64,000 bases of DNA from Auanema rhodensis. Taxonomy: Eukaryota > Animalia > Nematoda. The translations under genes and the position numbers were made by a program. How positions within the stretch are numbered: the first letter of the stretch is position 1; each line of letters opens with the position of its first letter. The stretch is from contig OZ059898.1 in NCBI GenBank assembly GCA_964057225.1, positions 8,308,001-8,372,000 of the forward strand, in the 5' to 3' direction. This document shows, piece by piece, positions 18,305 through 46,309 of this stretch. The notes beneath the pieces were generated by a model, which saw only the letters and a program-made list of their open reading frames with translations, did no database searches and was not told the origin of the DNA.

Positions 18305-20973
18305 TCAAAGTTTTTTCTTTTGTGAACATGGATTTTTACAGTATTCTAACTGCTTTGTATGTGAATTATGTCGTAAACCAACGGAGCACATGTTGAAGAC
18401 GTTACAACAATGATTTTCTGGACAATTGAATCCCGTAGTTAGAAGACGTTTCTTTAACGCCAAAATATCTTCTCGTTTAGGTAGTTGAAGAGATTCTATA
18501 ATACAACTTCTATTCATCTCTTTCATATATATTTTAACTACTTATTCTTTCAATTTTACGGCATTTTCAATAAGTATAGTCTAATCTATGTAATGAACTT
18601 ACCACTAGTGTCTTTTAATGTTGGCGAAGATGTTGATTCGGATGAAACACTTGTACTTGCTGTAGATCTCTTACTGTTCCTTGAGCTATGATCGCAGGAT
18701 CGACTTTCTAATCCACAGTTTATTTTTTCTTTGTCGCAGTCACGACGACGATGTTGAATGCCGTCATCACAGTCTGTCCATTCAGTTTCGGTTTCGTCAG
18801 CCAATACCAGTTTCTCAGATCGGTTTTCATCTGAATTGAAAGATGTCAATTCAAAAATTATGCTGAAGCTGTTGATTTGAGTATAGAATAAGCATAAGAT
18901 ACAGATATAAGTAGACTAAAAGTGACATAGTAAATGGATACAAACCTAGTACACGTATTCCTGACGCTCTACTTGGTGATGTACGACCACAGTCAATTTC
19001 AAAATAATCCACAATATCCGTATTTTCTTCAGTGAACAGGTCCGGATAACTATGACGGTTTTCGCTATTCAATATGCAATTTAACGTTGATTCCTGTAAC
19101 ATTTTATAGAAAACTAATGATATATATAGGTAACAAACTTCAAAATAATACATTCCACTTGTGCAGTTAAAGCCATAAAGCTCTAAACTATTGAGACAAC
19201 TATCAAAACATAGTTCAAAGCTTGCTGAATCAGCAACATTCTCAGCAAATCCCACGAGTATCATTTGAGGATATCTAGCAAAAGCTGATGTACATTGTCT
19301 GAAAGTAAAATAATATTTTAAAATAAATTGTATTCTCATATCACATACGATGCAAATTTTTCTGAAATACAAATTTTCTCGTAGTAAAAGCTTCCAGTTT
19401 TTTGTTTGAGCTGTCCTTCACCAACTGGCACTGCAGCTTCTTTTGTAAATGAGCAAGAATTGAGTTGTTGATCAAATGAACGACAATCAAATGGTTGATT
19501 ATCAATCTATTTTAAAATTATATTTTACATATTATATATTAAAACTTACAAGATTTGATTGACATACAGATATACATTCATTAACATCTGTTATAGTCAT
19601 TGTTATATCATCATTTTTGAATAATTCAAATCCTTCTGTTCGTAAAAATCTGGAATAAGAATGTATATATTCAATAAAAAAAAGATAATTATATGAAATA
19701 AAGTAAAGTTTTCTTGAAGAAGAGATGTATTAAGGCTAATCCTTAATACCTACCCGGCTTTTTTTCCACTGGCGCATTGCTGGCCGAAAGCGTCATCAAG
19801 AGAAGTTTGTTGAGTAATTAGCTGATCTGGCTGAATTTTGACTTTTTCATCTTCGATTTTACGTTGATCCGTGTGTGATGCAAGCGCAGCAATTTCTAAA
19901 GATTAGATTGAAATAGTGGATGTTGAAGATTTGTACCTGGAGTTTCATTTACGTTTAAGCATTGCACTGCTGAAGTTGGTTCAAAGTAATCTCGAGTTTG
20001 AAATTTAAGTAAACGAGCTGGTGATTGATCTCCAACATGTGCAAATAGATCACATACCTATATATATATTATTATAAATATTAATTATATAATAATTAAA
20101 ATATATAAATACCTGATTAATATTATCATAAACAAATGAACGACAACTATAAACTCCTGTTTGGCTATGAAGACAATGTGATTTACATTTAATTAATGAT
20201 GTCGATGATCTAAAATAATTTAAAAATTTCATATATTCTATGGAAAACTGACCTTCGCTCATATGGTTGTGCATTCACAACAATGCAATTCGCATATCGT
20301 CGGAAGCAAGGGTCACCTGAATATATCGCATCATCCACTTGAATCTATAGCGATTTAACAGAGAAAATCCCTAAAGCTTACTCATATCCGGAATTCCGGC
20401 TACAACTTGACGATCATCTTCTGGATCACGGCTGACTGTTCCAACTTCTTGAGATAAGCCAGGTGACTTTGATGTATCATGATGAAATCCATAAGCTCCA
20501 CCAGTAGATTTGACGTTATTTTCTTGTGGATCCTAAAAATGTCAAAAATAAAAATGAATTGAGTTTGATTGTACTAACAGGTAGAAAACGAAGATTTTGC
20601 ATTCGTTCCTCTTCAGGTTCATCCAAAGTCTCAAGATGTTTCTTTCGATTAAGAAAGTTGCTCATAGCATTTTTGCTCTAAACATAATAAAAAATAATTT
20701 AAAATAACAAATAATTCTTGAAAATACCTGTTCAATACGTGTTTGGTGTTTCTGACCAGCTGTATCAGCTTCATTTCTTAAGAATTTTTTGTAAATTATA
20801 AGAAAATATTAATCATATAGCTTACAATAAATCTTTACGAGCTGTTATATCTTCAAAAAATTGTGACTGAGCATAACTATATGATATACATAATATATAA
20901 ATTATAATTATATGAAAAGAACTATAATAATATTTTTAATTAATTATAAATAATATTTATTTACTTACAACAT
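18305..20973 (-). CDS. Secreted PAN/apple-domain protein (about 3 PAN modules, TSP1-like module, Cys-rich tail)
   Basis: A 5-nt first coding exon ATGTT (20969-20973) splices to give the signal peptide MFSFHIIIIYILCISYSYAQ. PAN modules: DPCFRRYANCIVVNAQPYERR..CKSHC..CRSFVYDNINQVCDLF, a second with DCRSFDQQLNSCSF, and a third FARYPQMILVGFAE..CFDSCL..CTSGMYYFE..NCILNSE. Then TEWTDCDDGIQHRRRDC..ESRSC and a last exon ending CKNPCSQKKKL*. Confidence 0.88.
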
Positions 20974-22226: not shown

Positions 22227-25200
22227 TTAATATCGAGCTTTTGCATTTGGTTCTGGAGCACGATCATCATTCACTACCAAATTTAATGCTCCATAGCTAT
22301 CGACTGAAAAAGAAAAATTAAAATAAAATAAGAAAATATATAAATTACCTGTATGAATGGATATATTATTATCGAGATCAGAGGGACGATACGTCATATA
22401 ACCAATTACTGTAGCTAAGATTGATAATAATTTACAAACAATAGCTGAAAATAAAATAAATAAAATAAAAATATATTTAACTATGCTCATACCAACTGCA
22501 GTGATAGTCCATGATAGCTTGACAGGATCATATACAAGACAACTTGTGTGATTTCCACATGATGATTCCCATTCTAAGCAAGCTGTATCAATCATCATAC
22601 CAAATAATATTCCACCCGGAATAAATCCTGCAACGATAGCATATTGGTAATTGTTACCGTACCCTCTGATAAGATATGTATACAGTACCTAATAGACGAA
22701 GGAATGTCCAGTTGATGCCAAGAGCTAATGTTCGCTGATCAAAAGGAACAACACGCAACATAATCTGCAATTTTTTGAACTTTTTTTTCATTTTTCGTTT
22801 TTTTTTTAAATTTAAAAAAGAAAAATCCCATTCTTTCAATTTGCAATTATAATTTGTAAAATGAAACCTGCTGTTGAGGAATTCCTGAGGCAAAGCTAGC
22901 AACAACAGTAACGAATAACATTGATAGTAAAACATATACTGAATAGCCACAGTCCTGCAATAAAACATTTAAGATCTAATGTACTTCCTAAAATTTTATT
23001 GCATTTTCAACAAACCTCTTGACAATATCCAGGAGTTGCTGTTGTAAGTAAAGATGATAGTGCTAATGATGTTTCATCACTACTAGTACCAGCACAGCCA
23101 CAATCCATCCAAGTGATCTATAAAAGATTATATTTGATTATAATTAAAATAAAATATGAAACATACATTTCCAGATGATTTGATTTTACAACCAGCAAAA
23201 CATGGAGAATAATAAATTTTGTTATTTGAACAAACAGGATTCCATTCACGTGGACAATCACATTGTGAGTTACAAGTATCTTGTAGATCAAATTCAGTAT
23301 TTCTTGTGATTTCACTGAAATAAAACATAAAATTCATTAAAAACTTATAAAAATTAAATAATTATAGTTTACATAATATTGTTAAAGTTTAATAAAGTTT
23401 TAATATACTAACCTATCATGATAGCCCATATTGATTCCGGCAAACTTTCTTTGTGGACAATGAACTAACATTCCGGTTGTGAAGATTAAAGCAACAATAT
23501 GACAACAAACAATCATCTTCAGCATTCCACCAACTTGAAGCTTAAGTTGTCGGATAATGGTACCGCCGACCATAACACCGATAGCTGCAGCAAAGATAAC
23601 TACGGCTGAAATAGAAAATTATTAAAAATTGAAAGAATTATAAGCTTACATGATAGATATGATGCAATAATTGGAGTGGTTGATAGTAATGTTTCCAAAA
23701 TTTTGGGCATAAATGCTGCAAATCCATTGATAATGATGGATTCAAATATTCCCAAACATATGCAAACAATGAAAGTTGGGTTACGACAAATTTTCTTGAA
23801 ATATACAGTTGATTATGATGTTAAGATTTTAAATTCAGTTTACCATGATAACGGCAGGAAGAGCTTTAACATCTGTTGGAGCTTTTTCATTCATATCTCC
23901 AGTTGCTGCATGACACTACATACAGTTAATGTTTTAAAGTTGTTAATCAATATAAAATGATATTACCTGATTAACATCTTTAGCTCTCAAACGTTTAGCT
24001 TCAGGTAATTGCCTAGCAAAAGCTAATATAGGAAAAGCTATAATGAGAGCTGAAATAGATGAAGCTAAGAATCCAATCCACCATGCTCCTATCCAACGAG
24101 GGTCAGATCGGTCAATAGGCACACTGTAAAATTATAATTCAATAACTTAATTTAAATTATTTGTATTTTATTATTTTGTACTTTCTATCAGAATACAAAA
24201 GATAATTCTATCATTTCTATCAGAAATCATTGAATTATCTTTCATTGAAAACCCGTCAATGTACTCAGGCGATACATTCCACCGGAATTATACACATCAA
24301 GTAGTCTATTGGCTAAGATGCAAAATGTTAGTAATGGGGTCCAGGGTTCGGATCCCGCCAAGTGATTAAGGTATATTTGCTACTCTAGAAAGAAGACTTG
24401 TTGACAATCTATAATGATGGCGATATTTTTGTTCTTTTATGAACAAAAAACTTGTTCATGTAATGTAAACTTCAAAGTTTTATAATTTTTCTTGTCAGGT
24501 TTGTGTATCAATAATAAGGAAATGAATGAAAGTGAACCATTGATGTTAGATAGTTCTTAAGAAGTTGGGTTGGTTTTGTTGAAACAATAAAATTAAAGAA
24601 AAGAAAAGTCCTTGAAAACATACTGGTCAACCCGATCAATATCATCGTAAAAGTTGAGAAGAAATCCGCCAGCAAATACTCCAATAACAGGTCCGAAAGA
24701 GGTAAGTACAGCATGTATGGCTATAATAGTTAAGTTTTAAAGAAATGAAATATAAATTTGAAACCTAAATATACAGGAGAAGCTTTTTGGCTAACATTTT
24801 CATCGATAAAAGTAGTTCCTATAGAGAATAATGGGGTTGATCCAAAACCATGCAGACTTTGACCCAATATAAACATTAAGAAATAAGGATTCAAGTATGA
24901 TGATACAGGATTAGCTGGACATTGTTTCTCATGTAGAGTTCTAAAATATTTTATATGATATATTTGAAAAATAAAAAATAATTTGAAGTTTCTTACCTAT
25001 GAGCACATTGTCCGAAATCTGTTGCATTGGCATTTGTCTCTTCAACTTCATACACATCAATCATCCAATGAGGTAAAGCACAAATCAGTGATCCAATAGC
25101 CATAACAATACCTCCCCATCCAATCCATCGACCTTTGTGTCCTGAAGTTTGAAAATTAAAATTTTTTTTTGTTTGAAATAATTGAAAATATTCAAAGAAA

Positions 25201-41098: not shown

Positions 41099-42444
41099 AT
41101 TACTGATATTAATATATCAAAATAAAATAAATTATATGATATAAGTTATATATATTTTGTATTCTCATGTATAAATACATATTTTAATTTAAAAAACGAA
41201 ATGAATAAGCATATTGAACTTAAAAAATTTTAAAATATTATATTTGAAAGTTTTAGAAAATGTTCTAATTATTGGCATTAAATAGTTTTCTTGAGCAGAT
41301 TATGAGGATTAACTATGACTAAGAAAAGTTATCTGGAGGTCATCGCCATTGTTTCCATTTTGAATAGAATAGAATAGTTTTACCATATTGCCAATAGCTT
41401 TTATTACATATAAGGATAAGAAGAAAATGAAATAAAAATATAAAAAGAAGAAGAATTGTTTTATGAATGAATTCAAATGAATTAAGGGGTTTATAATCAG
41501 ATTATGATTATAAAAAAGTTTCATTCGTGTTAAGTATATGAAACAATATGGTATGTACAATATGTATTTAATACATAATATATAAATATTTCCTAATAGA
41601 TTTCTAATATATACATATAGTATTCTTAACTATACTGATTATAGATTAAAGACTTTTTCTCCTAAACAAAAAAGGTTTTTATCATCATTCTTTACCATTC
41701 TTTATCTGTTTTTTTCGCATTTCCCACTTGTCTCTCATAAATCTATCGTAATCATTGACACCCGGGTAATAAGACAATATTTTCTATTTTATTATGTGAA
41801 TTGTATAATGAATATTGTACATTTTAGTTTATATAGAAAGAATGAAAAACATCTTTTTTTGAAAAAAATCTATTTATTATGCATGTTTAGGGTGAAAATT
41901 ATAAATCTTTTGAGCTATAAAAGTATTTACATAAATATAATTTTTTGTCTATTAGCATGGTTAATGTAAAGTCGTTATACGACTTTAGACATATATATAT
42001 ATATATATATAAGAATACACATATACTGACAATCAGAATTGGAAGACCTAAGTATTTGAAGATTAGAAAACAATACTCAAGTTTGTACAATAAGGTAGCA
42101 AAGTTGGTCAAGCTATGCTTAAACTTGAAAAATGGAAAGAGATTGATCAGAAAATAATAACATCTGATACAAGATTCACAAAATTTGCTTTGAAAAAAAA
42201 TGAAGAAAATTCGACAAAAAAACAAATAAAACACAAACACAGCACCGGCTATAGGCTGTTTGCCTTTGAAAAGGCAAAACCCGTAATCATCACGAGGCTC
42301 ATATCTACTAGAGAATGCACACTGGGGAGCGAGAAGAAATAATTTTTTCAGAAAAAGTACTGTATGTTACTTTTTTTGAAGTTTCTTCTAAACTATCTGA
42401 AGCTAACATAGCTCAGCTTGCTTGATGTTGAAGGCTTAATGGCT

Positions 42445-45400
42445 TCAGACAGATTCCAAGCCCGAATCATGAGCTCCAATAGATGAGTTAGGTGAGATGT
42501 GATGATAGATTCTTGTCTGTGGTGGTGGGATGGTAGAACGGTAGTTGTATCGTCCGGTTCCGATAGATGAGGCAGAATCAAGGGGTGAGGTAGTGGTGGC
42601 TGTGTCGGATTTGGTTTGCCAATATCCAAGATTACGATGATGTTCCCATGGCATATCATATCTGAAAAATAAAAGTATAATAGTGATATGAGAAGATAAT
42701 TTAGAAATGAAGATATGAGAAGGGAGAGAATATAATTAGATGTCAGAAGCTAAGTAGACTATGATGAAGAGATGATGAAGTATTATAATTCATATTAACA
42801 CCTAACAGCTAACAGCTAACAGCTATTAGTCGAGCTTTAAAATATACATAATCTATTCAATCATCTTTTTGTATTTTAATGACGAGCAGAAGGTATAGTA
42901 AGAGAAAAATATGAGAGAGAAAGAGGTAAAAGATGATAAGGATAGTGATTGGGTAAGATACAGGTTGACAGATAGGCGAGAGAGGTGTGCGAGCTGACGT
43001 CAATTCATCATAATTGACTAGGAGTTCGAAGAAAAATCAGTAGAAGAGATATAGAGGCCAGCCGGATAATGATATATGACTGACTGATGGCATATTACAG
43101 AAGACCTTGGATCATATAGTGGTTGAAATCTCATAGTTATAGCTAATTCAAGTAAATTGTGCTAACTCATATAGTTAAAGAAGCCTATTAGAAGTGTTAG
43201 AAAAAAAGATATGGTCAGGAATAAGAAAAGATTAAGGATGGAAAAAGTACCGTACCTGGATTCGTCATCAGTTTTTACAAGAGCTGGAGAGTATGGAAGA
43301 TGGTAGCGTGGCTTGACCGAGATTTGACGAGATGTTCTGGAACAACTATATATATAATTAAGAGAAAATAGTCTTTAATGAAAAAATAAAAATAAAAATA
43401 TTATATATTCAAAACTCACTTCTTTTGGCGCATAAAAGCTACAAGAAGGCATCCAAAAGCAGCTGAAGTGCTGACGGCAATAGCAGCAAGAACGAGCATG
43501 CCGATGTGCATCAGACGGTCTTCTCCACGGAGTGGAGCAAGAATGGAAGCTGAGAATACAGATGGATCATCCGAAATCTGTAAAAAACAAAATAAGTTCT
43601 ATGTTTGAATAATCTTTATGCGTTTTATTGGTTTTGAATATTAAGGCCGGAATTTCACGTTGAGTTCAGATGACCGTAAGTTAGACTGCGAAACATTGTG
43701 CAATATGGCTTGGCCACCACAGGGGGTCAGACAGTAAGTATAGCATAGTTATGTTTTAGTATAAGGCACATATAGTTATCCACGTAAGTATATGGGAATA
43801 AGCATAATTGCCAGGTCATTCGGTATTAAGGGTCGTCATCTCGATGAAGATGTCAGTAGAAGAAGAATATTGAAGTAAGTGATAGATAGCAATTAAGAAT
43901 CTGTTCAATATTTTCTCGTTTTTTAGGTTAAACTATACTCTAATTATACAGATGTATGTGTGATTAGTTATGCACTATATAGTATATTAAATATGAAAAG
44001 CAAGGCATACCTCTTGTCCAATAATGGTTAAATCCTCTGGATCAGGGCAAGTTGGGCATCGTTCAGTATGTTTCTCAATGGTCAAAGTAGCATTAAAGCA
44101 TTTACCACGGATCTGAAAATAAGAAAAAAATGAGATTGTTTCACAGAAAATGGGAATATTTTTCTTTGACAATTGAAATGAAACCAACCTCAATAATGCT
44201 TTTTCCCCTTTCCTCAGTGCCTTCCATTTGGTGGCGACGTGAACGGGATGCCTAGAATGACACAACAATTAATTAGATTTTCTTCAAATTATTTGAAAAG
44301 ATGATTGTAAATGATAAATTGCTTGAAATTGTCTTCTGTTGAATACAGTTTGCTCTGCTGCCATAAACAGTATGACTGCTGTACTTGTATTGTATGAATT
44401 GAAGGGAAGAGAGACTGATGACTTCTATTAACAACAACAACGACGACGACGATGACGACGTCAACGATAACGATTATGAATACAACGACATCTACAAGCT
44501 CACTAATGTATATATCAGTTGCGTCACAGAGGACTGTATGCAACATCTGTTTTACATCTGCATGTGTCATGTATTGTCATGTCATCAACCTCATCATCAG
44601 CATTGTCGTTGTCAAGCATCATGCAGCAGGCAGTAGCTGGCTACTATTCTTCCTTTTCAACATCTTTAACTGCTGCTCTACTTCAGACAAAGCAATTAAG
44701 AAGCAGATGAAGAGGTCATCATATACTTTGTATTGACATGGCAATTAAAACATTTGAAGAAGACAATAGTCAAGTGTAGACAATTTAGTTTTTTTAGATT
44801 CAATTATGATTATTCTATGTTCAATATTTCTATTTAGTAATACTCACCAATGGCTCAAATTCAGGAACTTGAAATACACGGATTGAAGCTGTCTTATCGC
44901 ATGTACGAGGAAATCCATACATGGTATCTGTACCAACTACTTGACAAGATACTGAAACTTCTTCAGGCTTTCCTGATCTCCATTCAGATACAAGAACACG
45001 TGGAGCATCCTATAAGTATATTATTAAGATCTTTATAGAATATGCTATAAGGATTGATCAACTTGTTCACAAAATAGCTATATACTTCGATATGATTGGG
45101 AGGTAAACTCTATTCAAACCTTATGCTATAGGCTAATATACCCATAAGCTAATATTATCTGCCAGGATATTTTCCGAGTACGATACAAAAGATATAGATA
45201 AAGATAAAAATAAGAAAGAAGAATTCAAAAAATAAAAGAGAAATAAGAAAATAGAAAAAATAATTAATCGATATTAAGATATTTGAGATATCAAAAGTAT
45301 ATATCTAACACCTTTGATGTCCTGAATGATGAAAAACAAATCGACTGTTTAAGAAGATCATATTACGTAATCATTTAGTAAAAAATTGCAATTAATTGAC

Positions 45401-46097
45401 GCCATTTGTCGGATTCCGACGACGTCACAAAGTCAACCGCGTTAAGAGTTTATGAGCAATTGATGTTACGCAAGAAGGCAATCTGATCCTGTTGAGGACA
45501 GCTCACACATAATACTCGAAAAGTCAGATGAACTACGTTGATATGAATTGTTAAGTTAATTTTAATATAATATATAAATAAAATAAATAATTGAACTCTA
45601 AAATGTATAAAAACTCAGATCAAAATATGGATACGCGGCTTTTATAAGATATATTGTAAATCATGAACATGAGGGAACAAAGGTAATTGAGCTTTGTAAA
45701 TAAGGCTGCGGAAGCTTTTTTCGGCATTTGTTACCAAATGGCAATGAGAAGACCAAAATTGGGAGAATAGATTGTAAACAGTAATTAGAAAGTGTCTAAT
45801 CTGAAGGCTAGGCAATAGATGTAGAAGAAGAATAGTAGTTGAATGAAGTATTAGTGTATATAGTAGATAGATATTTTTCAATCTTACCTGTACAAAATGC
45901 TCAGAAATTGGCCAGCTGATTGTTCGTTCATCGCTAATTGTCAAAAGTTCTTCTTGAATTTTGAATCGAGGCTGAGCACAATTGGCTGTCGTTAGACATC
46001 CTTCGCGCCAATCAACCTTCACAAGCTCTGTTGTGATCCAAAATGTATCAGCAGATACAAGAGATGCTAATAAGCTGAGTGCTACGAAGAATAACAT
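42445..46097 (-). CDS. 330-aa type I membrane protein with a C2-like (Notch-ligand N-terminus-like) ectodomain
   Basis: Exons 45888-46097, 44848-45009, 44189-44251, 44011-44112, 43420-43577, 43256-43336 and 42445-42661 (993 nt, all GT-AG, phases consistent). Signal MLFFVALSLLASLVSA, Cys-containing beta-rich ectodomain, TM IGMLVLAAIAVSTSAAFGCLLVAFM, stop-transfer RQKK, tail ending HDSGLESV*. The gene model is solid; the C2 assignment is inference. Confidence 0.85.
42787..42826. repeat. Short 7-bp tandem repeat (CTAACAG)x3 in an intron
   Basis: cctaacagctaacagctaacagcta near 42801-42825. Confidence 0.7.
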
Positions 46098-46309
46098 ATC
46101 TAAAATATGAAAAATGAGTAAAGAAAAAGATAATCCTTAGCTAAATAAGAATAAAAAAATAAAAAATACACGAAAAATCAATAAATATAAATAAAATAAT
46201 AATAGTAATAGTTATGAATATATAGAAATATAGTTAGTACTGAAACATTAACAAGCATTAGCCAGCTAATGAAGATGACGTAAAGGCCAATGACAAGTAC
46301 GAACAATGA

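Follow-up and report, generated by a model that had tools for sequence, protein, structure and literature searches.

The gene on the minus strand at positions 46097-42445 of the window, the 64,000-nt stretch of Auanema rhodensis DNA analysed here, encodes a type I membrane protein whose folded ectodomain is wholly one C2 sandwich, placed straight after the signal peptide. We favour the view that this member of the nematode C2_nem family, an orthologue of Caenorhabditis elegans R10E12.2 and C05B5.4, serves at the cell surface as a receptor or adhesion molecule that would bind through its apex and be controlled through its tail, and that it is probably not a canonical Notch ligand. What is new here is one added orthologue with a clean, transcript-verified gene model, the family itself being already in Pfam; a new kind of system is not established by this gene.

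Gene structure and protein architecture

The ATG lies at 46097 and the stop codon at 42447-42445. Seven exons joined across GT..AG introns give an assembled ORF of 1002 nt, coding for 333 aa, and both strings quoted in the original prediction, DTFWITTELVKVDWREGCLTTANCAQPRFKI and IRGKCFNATLTIE, fall within it. Transcript contigs of 1422-1563 nt, obtained from four runs of one study, match the model exons exactly, with 0 mismatches, and all six introns are confirmed by spliced contigs (joints at 42661/43256, 43345/43420, 43577/44011, 44112/44189, 44250-1/44847-8 and 45008-9/45887-8). Given that the contigs lie on exactly the model exons, the model is expressed and the introns hold no further coding exon. 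The possibility that the large introns conceal DSL or EGF exons was ruled out, since the contigs skip these introns and no Cys-rich ORF is present there. No tandem paralogue was detected by tblastn in the 64-kb window. In the 5' leader, four of four contigs carry one mismatch and end within 1-5 nt, as would be expected of an SL1 (..GTTTGAG) trans-splice junction. The features of the gene are listed below in the direction of transcription.

46098..46105, minus strand: short 5' leader, downstream of a TTTTAG acceptor (contigs, sequence)
45888..46097, minus strand: exon 1, aa 1-70, with start codon, signal peptide and C2 strands beta1-beta3 (model, contigs, Pfam)
46097-46050, minus strand: signal peptide coding stretch, exon 1
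46007-45978, minus strand: CBR1 loop WREGCLTTANC, exon 1
44848..45009, minus strand: exon 2, aa 71-124, C2 strands beta4-beta6 (model, contigs, Pfam)
44934-44896, minus strand: most conserved loop, GTDTMYGFPRTCD, exon 2 (family conservation)
44189..44251, minus strand: exon 3, aa 125-145, a 63-nt phase-0 mini-exon for the disordered beta6-beta7 loop (model, contigs)
44245-44234, minus strand: furin-type RSRR site, exon 3
44011..44112, minus strand: exon 4, aa 146-179, C2 strands beta7-beta8 (model, contigs, Pfam, invariant Cys)
44094-44086, minus strand: sequon within GKCFNAT, exon 4
44058-44047, minus strand: stalk motif CPTC, exon 4
43420..43577, minus strand: exon 5, aa 180-232, juxtamembrane stalk and TM helix (model, contigs, hydropathy)
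43505-43431, minus strand: TM helix, exon 5 (hydropathy; helix 200-239 in the orthologue model)
43256..43345, minus strand: exon 6, aa 232-262, the stretch of cytoplasmic tail nearest the membrane (model, contigs)
42445..42661, minus strand: exon 7, aa 262-333 and stop, tail with RYDMPWE, TSPLDS and SPNSS (model, contigs, conservation)
42468-42448, minus strand: C-terminal DSGLESV, exon 7 (C-terminal census)
41894..42444, minus strand: 3' UTR (contig ends fall between 41894 and 42034)

Hydropathy places the signal peptide at residues 1-16 (VSA|D) and only one TM segment, at about 204-228 and ahead of RQK. Cysteines occur in the ectodomain at positions 34, 40, 92, 107, 150, 164 and 167, together with one sequon, NAT at 152, and in the orthologue model described below about 40 residues lead from the C2 domain to the TM helix. 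The original prediction had placed the gene at this position, which the gene model and the transcript contigs show to be correct, and had described a signal peptide, a Cys-containing ectodomain, one TM helix and a tail; this layout is borne out by the gene model and hydropathy, with an ectodomain of about 185 aa and a tail of 105 aa. Its further claim that no DSL or EGF module follows the C2 domain agrees with Pfam, the transcript contigs and six orthologues.

A family of nematode C2 proteins

Exons 1, 2 and 4 match the Pfam family PF25330 C2_nem, "Nematode specific C2 domain", which has a gathering score of 27 bits. Exon 1 (2.4e-16, 60.4 bits, profile positions 2-53) and exon 2 (3e-16, 60.1 bits, positions 56-101) each exceed this score, and exon 4 alone aligns with the last 18 profile positions (125-142; 3.7e-4, 20.8 bits). 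The nearest protein, an Auanema orthologue with 87% identity over the full length, matches C2_nem as a full-length protein at profile positions 2-142 (2.5e-50, 170.5 bits). The domain is thus not an undescribed one, Pfam already curating it as a nematode-specific C2. Exon 1 as the only query retrieved 78 relatives at E<=1e-3, and with the 87% identity of the orthologue this puts conservation far above chance.

In the family tree, the sister of the gene product is a protein of Auanema sp. JU1783 (support 99/92), within the clade V group of R10E12.2 and C05B5.4. The tree agrees with the species phylogeny, and R10E12.2 and C05B5.4 represent a Caenorhabditis-specific duplication. By this phylogeny the gene is a C2_nem member co-orthologous to C. 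elegans R10E12.2 (P34553) and C05B5.4 (P34292), the nematode orthologues that the original prediction had proposed to look for. It does not turn out to be a known, characterised gene of another family, because both C. elegans members are uncharacterised: in a literature search R10E12.2 was not mentioned and C05B5.4 appeared once, in a gene list. One publication with the wording 'nematode specific C2' (PMC12152873) concerns a tmem-24 orthologue, an unrelated protein with C1 and C2 domains.

The C. elegans proteins and the window protein alike have a signal peptide, C2_nem, a TM helix and a tail, as well as six invariant cysteines, the GKCFNAT sequon and the CPxC stalk, and R10E12.2 also ends in ...SPNSS...DDSGLESV. 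The Caenorhabditis proteins differ in sequence, with about 41-47% identity to the window protein; they lack the R-x-R-R loop site that the window protein keeps, and in C05B5.4 the end of the tail is replaced by ...PPV. Across the family we met one architecture, namely a signal peptide, one C2_nem, one TM and an unstructured tail with a conserved C-terminus, and here too six cysteines are invariant and one N-glycosylation sequon is conserved. Family members were met among rhabditid nematodes only. A profile search of 5.8 billion proteins at E<=0.1 returned nothing beyond nematode C2_nem proteins, and 49 weaker or shorter phmmer matches, scanned with Pfam, gave C2_nem only. A bacterial phmmer match of 2006 aa was spurious, being a repetitive DUF11/DUF7507 surface protein.

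Modelled fold of the ectodomain

The AF2 model was built for the Auanema orthologue with 87% identity, which stands in for the window protein. It shows an eight-strand sandwich, with pLDDT >90 over most of residues 19-161, and all its significant Foldseek matches are C2 domains. VIA-align against 48,161 PDB chains likewise gave C2 domains for all of the best 50 matches (Z 6.6-8.7), and sequential alignments cover residues 16-164 against the C2 domains of cPLA2, PLC-delta1, DLL and Jagged, which are of type II (PMC5538765). As modelled, the ectodomain is an eight-stranded antiparallel C2 beta-sandwich with type II strand order. The call of a C2 beta-sandwich, made from the raw sequence, was correct, as judged by Pfam C2_nem, the AF2 model and both structural searches.

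The best Foldseek E-values belong to cytosolic C2 domains, with 3.5e-4 for the phosphatidylcholine-bound cPLA2 C2, and the top Z values (8.5-9.0) to cytosolic type II C2 domains, those of cPLA2-alpha, otoferlin/dysferlin C2A, PLC-delta1 and plant CAR4. The window domain and these cytosolic domains share fold and strand order; however, the latter occur inside the cell, contain no disulfides and in most cases depend on calcium and several Asp for lipid binding, whereas the window domain is predicted to lie outside the cell and to be glycosylated and stapled by disulfides, with no more than two Asp conserved near its apex. These conserved acidic residues, D98 and D108 in model numbering, lie near CBR3, and there are none in CBR1. 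A calcium-binding C2 domain typically has a cluster of about five Asp/Asn ligands in CBR1 and CBR3. With so few conserved acidic residues in the apex loops, classical multi-calcium lipid binding seems unlikely. Many true C2 domains, including those of DLL1 and DLL4, are without calcium sites (PMC5538765).

Comparison with Notch-ligand C2 domains

The original prediction had compared the opening of the domain with the C2 (MNNL) domain of Notch ligands, and soft support for this likeness was obtained. For exon 1, every ESM-feature neighbour is an MNNL cluster (0.86, 171 shared features), and for the whole domain, with its own family skipped, MNNL clusters come first (0.86/160 and 0.83/156), followed by generic C2 (0.81/126); by the tool's own calibration, scores <0.9 are leads only. 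The best non-self Atlas structural neighbour by TM is a Delta-like cluster (0.60). The C2 domains of DLL1, Jagged2, DLL4, Serrate and Delta stand in the top tie (Z 7.8-8.4 over 119-128 residues), where DLL1 gives the longest alignment (Z 8.4 over 128 residues) and DLL4 shows 13% identity. These ligand domains are equalled or surpassed in score by the C2 domains of ferlins, cPLA2 and plants and, since all lie within one Z unit, the structural ranking does not split Notch-ligand from cytosolic C2.

Profile searches gave no demonstrable homology to go with this likeness. In hmmsearch of every PDB chain sequence (E<=10), the full-length and C2-only family profiles retrieved TM-helix noise and no DSL ligand, and among the 5.8 billion proteins searched at E<=0.1 the family profile matched no such ligand. 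Pfam scans of the exons and six orthologues at E<=10 contained no match to MNNL (PF07657) and no DSL domain, with only CPxC after the C2, and EGF repeats were likewise not found in the Pfam scan of these sequences. The long beta2-beta3 loop of the ligand C2, disulfide-stapled to strand 2, constitutes site 1 for binding Notch EGF12 (PMC5538765). This loop is missing here, its place being taken by four residues (52-55 of the orthologue model) with a conservation of 0.35. Kinship with the Notch-ligand C2 is only a lead and stays unproven; neither homology to MNNL nor a Notch function, in the sense of the original prediction, was supported given the profile results, the equal or better cytosolic C2 scores and the missing loop.

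One way to read the likeness is that the family is an MNNL offshoot, a DSL ligand stripped of its DSL domain and EGF repeats that would still serve as a LIN-12/GLP-1 co-ligand, decoy or cis-modulator (a 'split ligand'). DSL ligands (Jagged1/2, DLL1/4, Serrate and Delta) are, like the window protein, type I proteins in which the signal peptide is directly followed by an extracellular type II C2 with cysteines around beta1-beta2, and the C-terminal S-x-V is a further common trait: DLL1, DLL4 and JAG1 end in PDZ ligands. Nematodes also have DOS-only proteins, such as OSM-11, and these points join the top-ranked MNNL clusters, the Delta-like TM match and the DLL1 alignment in its favour. We nevertheless consider it very improbable, given that the ESM scores fall short of the calibrated value, the family profiles match no DSL ligand, C2 domains of ferlins, cPLA2 and plants do as well or better, and neither of the Notch-binding parts, the long loop (site 1) and the DSL domain (site 2), is present. 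Unlike DSL ligands, the window protein also lacks a DOS motif, and the apex loops are conserved in C2_nem but variable in the DSL-ligand C2. The bolder form of the idea, in which C2_nem proteins would be free-standing descendants of the Notch-ligand C2 and, next to the DSL-only and DOS-only proteins, a third part into which the nematode ligand was 'split', tuning LIN-12/GLP-1 or sensing the lipid surface of a neighbour via the apex, deserves equally little credence.

A role outside Notch could also accompany descent from MNNL or a recent shared extracellular C2 ancestor, for example as a trans-acting lipid or glycolipid sensor; this we regard as possible, though unlikely. To our knowledge, extracellular C2 domains are rare and include those of perforin and DSL ligands, and the perforin C2 also stands in the top tie (Z 8.0). 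The structural and language-model leads given above apply here as well, and Notch-ligand C2 domains bind liposomes via the same apex loops (PMC5538765). Set against this are the sequence statistics, which support descent no further than the C2 superfamily, and the paucity of conserved acidic calcium ligands.

Putative working of the apex, loop and tail

The well-studied extracellular C2 domains, those of Notch ligands and perforin, work by contacting an adjacent membrane. For the reading that we prefer, a surface receptor or adhesion molecule, the working surface would be the membrane-distal apex, formed by the CBR1/CBR3-equivalent loops and the beta7-beta8 hairpin. These parts are the best conserved (apex loops L12 0.71, L56 0.76 and L78 0.83; bottom loops 0.34-0.53) and rich in aromatic and basic residues, which suggests that one conserved extracellular partner is probably recognised. 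That partner, across the extracellular space, may be a protein or a surface of lipid head groups, and the conserved N-glycan sequon adjoining the apex counts against deep membrane insertion. Residues 121-129 of the orthologue model, corresponding to the exon 3 loop, have pLDDT <50, and the R-x-R-R in this disordered beta6-beta7 loop could be cut by a furin/kex2-type convertase. Sixteen of 41 family members, distributed over clades III, IV and V, carry an R-x-[KR]-R site; its absence in Caenorhabditis and many others indicates that it is not essential.

At the other end of the protein, at least 90% of members keep the D and S of the DSG motif. The commonest C-terminus in the family is [HD]DSGLESV, and most members end in -SV or -SI. 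The beta-TrCP phosphodegron is D-S-G-x-x-S (DSGLDS in IkB-alpha, DSGIHS in beta-catenin) and a class I PDZ ligand is a C-terminal S/T-x-V, so that the DSGLESV end is a candidate for both a beta-TrCP/LIN-23 phosphodegron (D-S-G-x-x-S) and a class I PDZ ligand (S-x-V), a likeness to known degrons and PDZ ligands that is a motif match only, with the second Ser one residue from the C-terminus. These matches suggest that surface level and localisation are probably set via the tail. We infer the apex-binding, convertase, degron and PDZ roles alike from motifs.

The tail could instead serve sorting, with the protein residing in the secretory or endolysosomal system and its C2 facing the lumen. Rhabditine members carry Y-H-H-I, of the YxxPhi type, upstream of SPNSS, the acidic and serine clusters of the tail are typical of sorting signals, and the convertase site would suit processing in the trans-Golgi. 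However, the YxxPhi motif is not family-wide and PDZ ligands of the S-x-V type at the C-terminus are a usual mark of plasma-membrane proteins, so we think a residence of this kind quite unlikely and retain the surface receptor or adhesion molecule.

C2_nem is a strongly conserved, nematode-only family with little beyond the C2 and a tail with an IkB-like DSGxxS/PDZ end, and its members are so far unstudied, though two of them are in C. elegans. Nematode parasites of animals and plants (Haemonchus, Necator, filariae, Heterodera and Meloidogyne) have the family and vertebrates lack it, a distribution that could make it of practical interest.

Gene structure, transcripts and protein architecture

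The gene lies on the minus strand, its start and stop coinciding exactly with the ends of the original prediction, and was assembled from the raw sequence as seven exons:

46097-45888, minus strand, exon 1
45009-44848, minus strand, exon 2
44251-44189, minus strand, exon 3
44112-44011, minus strand, exon 4
43577-43420, minus strand, exon 5
43345-43256, minus strand, exon 6
42661-42445, minus strand, exon 7

Each intron has GT..AG ends and a nematode-type, TTTCAG-like acceptor; the 1002-nt ORF encodes 333 aa. Transcript contigs of 1422-1563 nt, from four sequencing runs of a single study, match the seven exons exactly (0 mismatches) and cover all six exon joints. The introns missing from these contigs (74-878 nt) have CT..AC ends on the plus strand, and the contigs therefore represent spliced RNA; because they match all seven exons, the gene is expressed and the model is right. 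The spliced contigs from the four runs revealed no extra exon in the large introns, and their 3' UTR extends 410-550 nt beyond the stop. In the short 5' leader (46098-46105, minus strand), all four contigs end 8 nt upstream of the ATG, next to a TTTTAG acceptor placed 2 nt before the start codon, and each carries a single mismatch there, which is consistent with an SL1 (..TTTGAG) trans-splice junction. Intron 6 (594 nt) contains a short (CTAACAG)n-like tandem repeat at 42798-42822, 'aacagctaacagctaacagcta', with no sign of function.

The encoded protein bears out the original description of a signal peptide, a Cys-containing ectodomain, one TM helix and a tail:

aa 1-16, signal peptide (VSA/D boundary)
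about 185 aa, ectodomain, with Cys 34, 40, 92, 107, 150, 164 and 167
aa 127-130, RSRR site
N152-A-T, sole sequon in the ectodomain
about aa 204-228, the only TM helix
105 aa following the TM helix, tail

Family membership and distribution

Translations of exons 1, 2 and 4 all match one Pfam family, PF25330 (C2_nem, 'Nematode specific C2 domain'), and tile its profile at positions 2-53 (E 2.4e-16), 56-101 (E 3e-16) and 125-142 (E 3.7e-4), respectively. With exon 1 as the query, phmmer found 78 relatives among 1.84 billion representative proteins, all from nematodes except for one bacterial repeat protein, which was rejected as spurious. P0101 from Auanema sp. JU1783 (334 aa), the nearest full-length protein, is 87% identical over its entire length. 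Two C. elegans members were identified from source names and cluster look-ups, R10E12.2 (P34553, 395 aa) and C05B5.4 (P34292, 315 aa), both labelled 'uncharacterized protein'; the literature searched had no mention of R10E12.2 and a single one of C05B5.4, in a listing of genes regulated by MAB-5.

In a maximum-likelihood tree, 36 members branch in agreement with the species phylogeny, and the Auanema rhodensis gene groups with the JU1783 protein (support 99/92). The same tree derives R10E12.2 and C05B5.4 from a duplication specific to Caenorhabditis, and the Auanema rhodensis gene is therefore co-orthologous to both. It adds a new orthologue to a nematode family that is known but uncharacterised, and we hold its identity and architecture as a C2_nem membrane protein to be almost certain. 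The family occurs in Rhabditida clades III, IV and V, with carriers among ascarids, filariae, oxyurids, Gnathostoma, Strongyloides, Steinernema and strongylids, as well as Panagrellus, Ditylenchus, Heterodera, Meloidogyne, Pristionchus and Caenorhabditis; beyond these clades none was found, even by the family profile at E≤0.1. Where most nematodes have between one and three C2_nem genes, the horse strongylid Cylicocyclus nassatus encodes more than 25 distinct paralogues (P0001, P0081-P0098 and others), nearly all on one 91.7-Mb contig, a lineage-specific family expansion.

Fold and relation to Notch ligands

The structure was modelled on P0101 with a 43-member family alignment. Eight strands span model residues 19-161 (pLDDT mostly >90), with disorder in the RSRR loop (121-129); the TM helix covers 200-239, and the tail has no structure in the model. 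Foldseek gave nine matches at E≤1e-3, every one a C2 domain, the best being that of cPLA2-alpha bound to phosphatidylcholine (3.5e-4); Jagged2 ranked 16th and Jagged1 25th and 29th. VIA-align of the Foldseek candidates gave Z 7.8-9.0 for 50 C2 entries. In an independent search of 48,161 PDB representatives, each of the top 50 was a C2 domain, among them otoferlin C2A (Z 8.7), DLL1 (8.4, rank 4, 128 residues aligned), cPLA2 (8.3), Serrate (8.2), perforin C2 (8.0) and fly Delta (7.8). Alignments were sequential over all eight strands of the cPLA2, PLC-delta1 and Notch-ligand C2 domains, which are of type II (Suckling et al. 2017, PMC5538765). The model and its structural matches thus confirm the C2 beta-sandwich guessed from the sequence, yet this reading was already catalogued, the Pfam curators having got there earlier.

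The likeness to Notch ligands, also proposed originally, fared less evenly. ESM-Atlas feature searches placed clusters of MNNL (PF07657), the N-terminal C2 domain of DSL Notch ligands, as the three best for exon 1 (0.86, 171 shared features) and first for the whole domain with its own family excluded (0.86/160 and 0.83/156), ahead of generic C2 clusters (0.81/126 and 0.78/92), although the tool itself rates scores <0.9 as leads only. By TM score, the closest structural neighbours other than the family itself were Delta-like clusters, and, like DSL ligands, this type I protein has an extracellular type II C2 domain right after the signal peptide and a tail ending in S-x-V. However, cytosolic C2 domains equal those of Notch ligands in structural score against the model, and searches with C2_nem family profiles, run to E≤10 on PDB sequences and to E≤0.1 on the large protein database, recovered no DSL ligand. 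What distinguishes the ligand C2 is its long beta2-beta3 loop, which is stapled to strand 2 and provides site 1 for binding Notch EGF12 (PMC5538765), whereas this loop in the model has only four, poorly conserved residues. The apex loops differ as well, CBR1 and CBR3 being the most conserved here rather than variable. The protein also differs from DSL ligands in having no DSL domain (site 2) and no EGF/DOS repeats; the Pfam scan and the spliced transcript agree with the original prediction in revealing neither DSL nor EGF modules. We conclude that it cannot engage Notch canonically. Descent from a ligand C2 is only a possibility, and the Notch-ligand link is a lead that the profile statistics do not support.

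Conserved apex and tail

Column conservation mapped on the model marks the membrane-distal apex as the conserved face: the beta1-beta2 loop (W-R-x-G-C-L-T-T-x-x-C) scores 0.71, the beta5-beta6 loop with strand 6 (G-x-D-P-x-Y-G-F-P-R-x-C-D) 0.76-0.80 and the beta7-beta8 hairpin (G-K-C-F-N-A-T) 0.83, against 0.34-0.53 for the bottom loops. Six Cys are invariant in the family. Aromatic and basic side chains occur at the apex together with an N-glycan, a composition that suits recognition of a conserved partner, which might be a lipid head-group surface or a protein, over deep insertion into the membrane. A separate 63-nt phase-0 exon encodes the beta6-beta7 loop, a long and disordered stretch that varies among members yet has an R-x-[KR]-R-H motif in 16 of 41 of them, across clades III, IV and V; the motif suggests a candidate convertase site, ancestral but dispensable.

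Short motifs are conserved in the tail (R-Y-D-x-P-W-E, T-S-P-L-D-S and S-P-N-S-S), and most members share the C-terminus [H/D]-D-S-G-L-E-S-V, in which at least 90% of members keep the D and the S. The beta-TrCP/LIN-23 degron is D-S-G-x-x-S, as in the DSGLDS of IkB-alpha, and S-x-V is a class I PDZ ligand ending; D-S-G-L-E-S-V matches both motifs. After the Caenorhabditis duplication, one copy of the R10E12.2/C05B5.4 pair kept the ancestral DDSGLESV end and the other replaced it with a proline-rich ...PPPNF(S/A)PPV, which suggests that the two diverged in tail control. The protein is best read as a surface receptor or adhesion molecule, the tail of which would control its level and position; we put forward this pairing of apex binding with tail control only tentatively.

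Neighbouring sequence

Two other reading frames were recognized on the minus strand. A 173-aa ORF or exon at 18854-19372 contains a PAN (apple) domain (PF00024, 4.6e-08) and is probably part of another secreted or membrane protein gene. The ORF at 22230-22598, the first 27 residues of which match the last OATP positions (PF03137, 1.6e-05, just below the gathering score), probably represents the final exon of an OATP organic-anion transporter gene.
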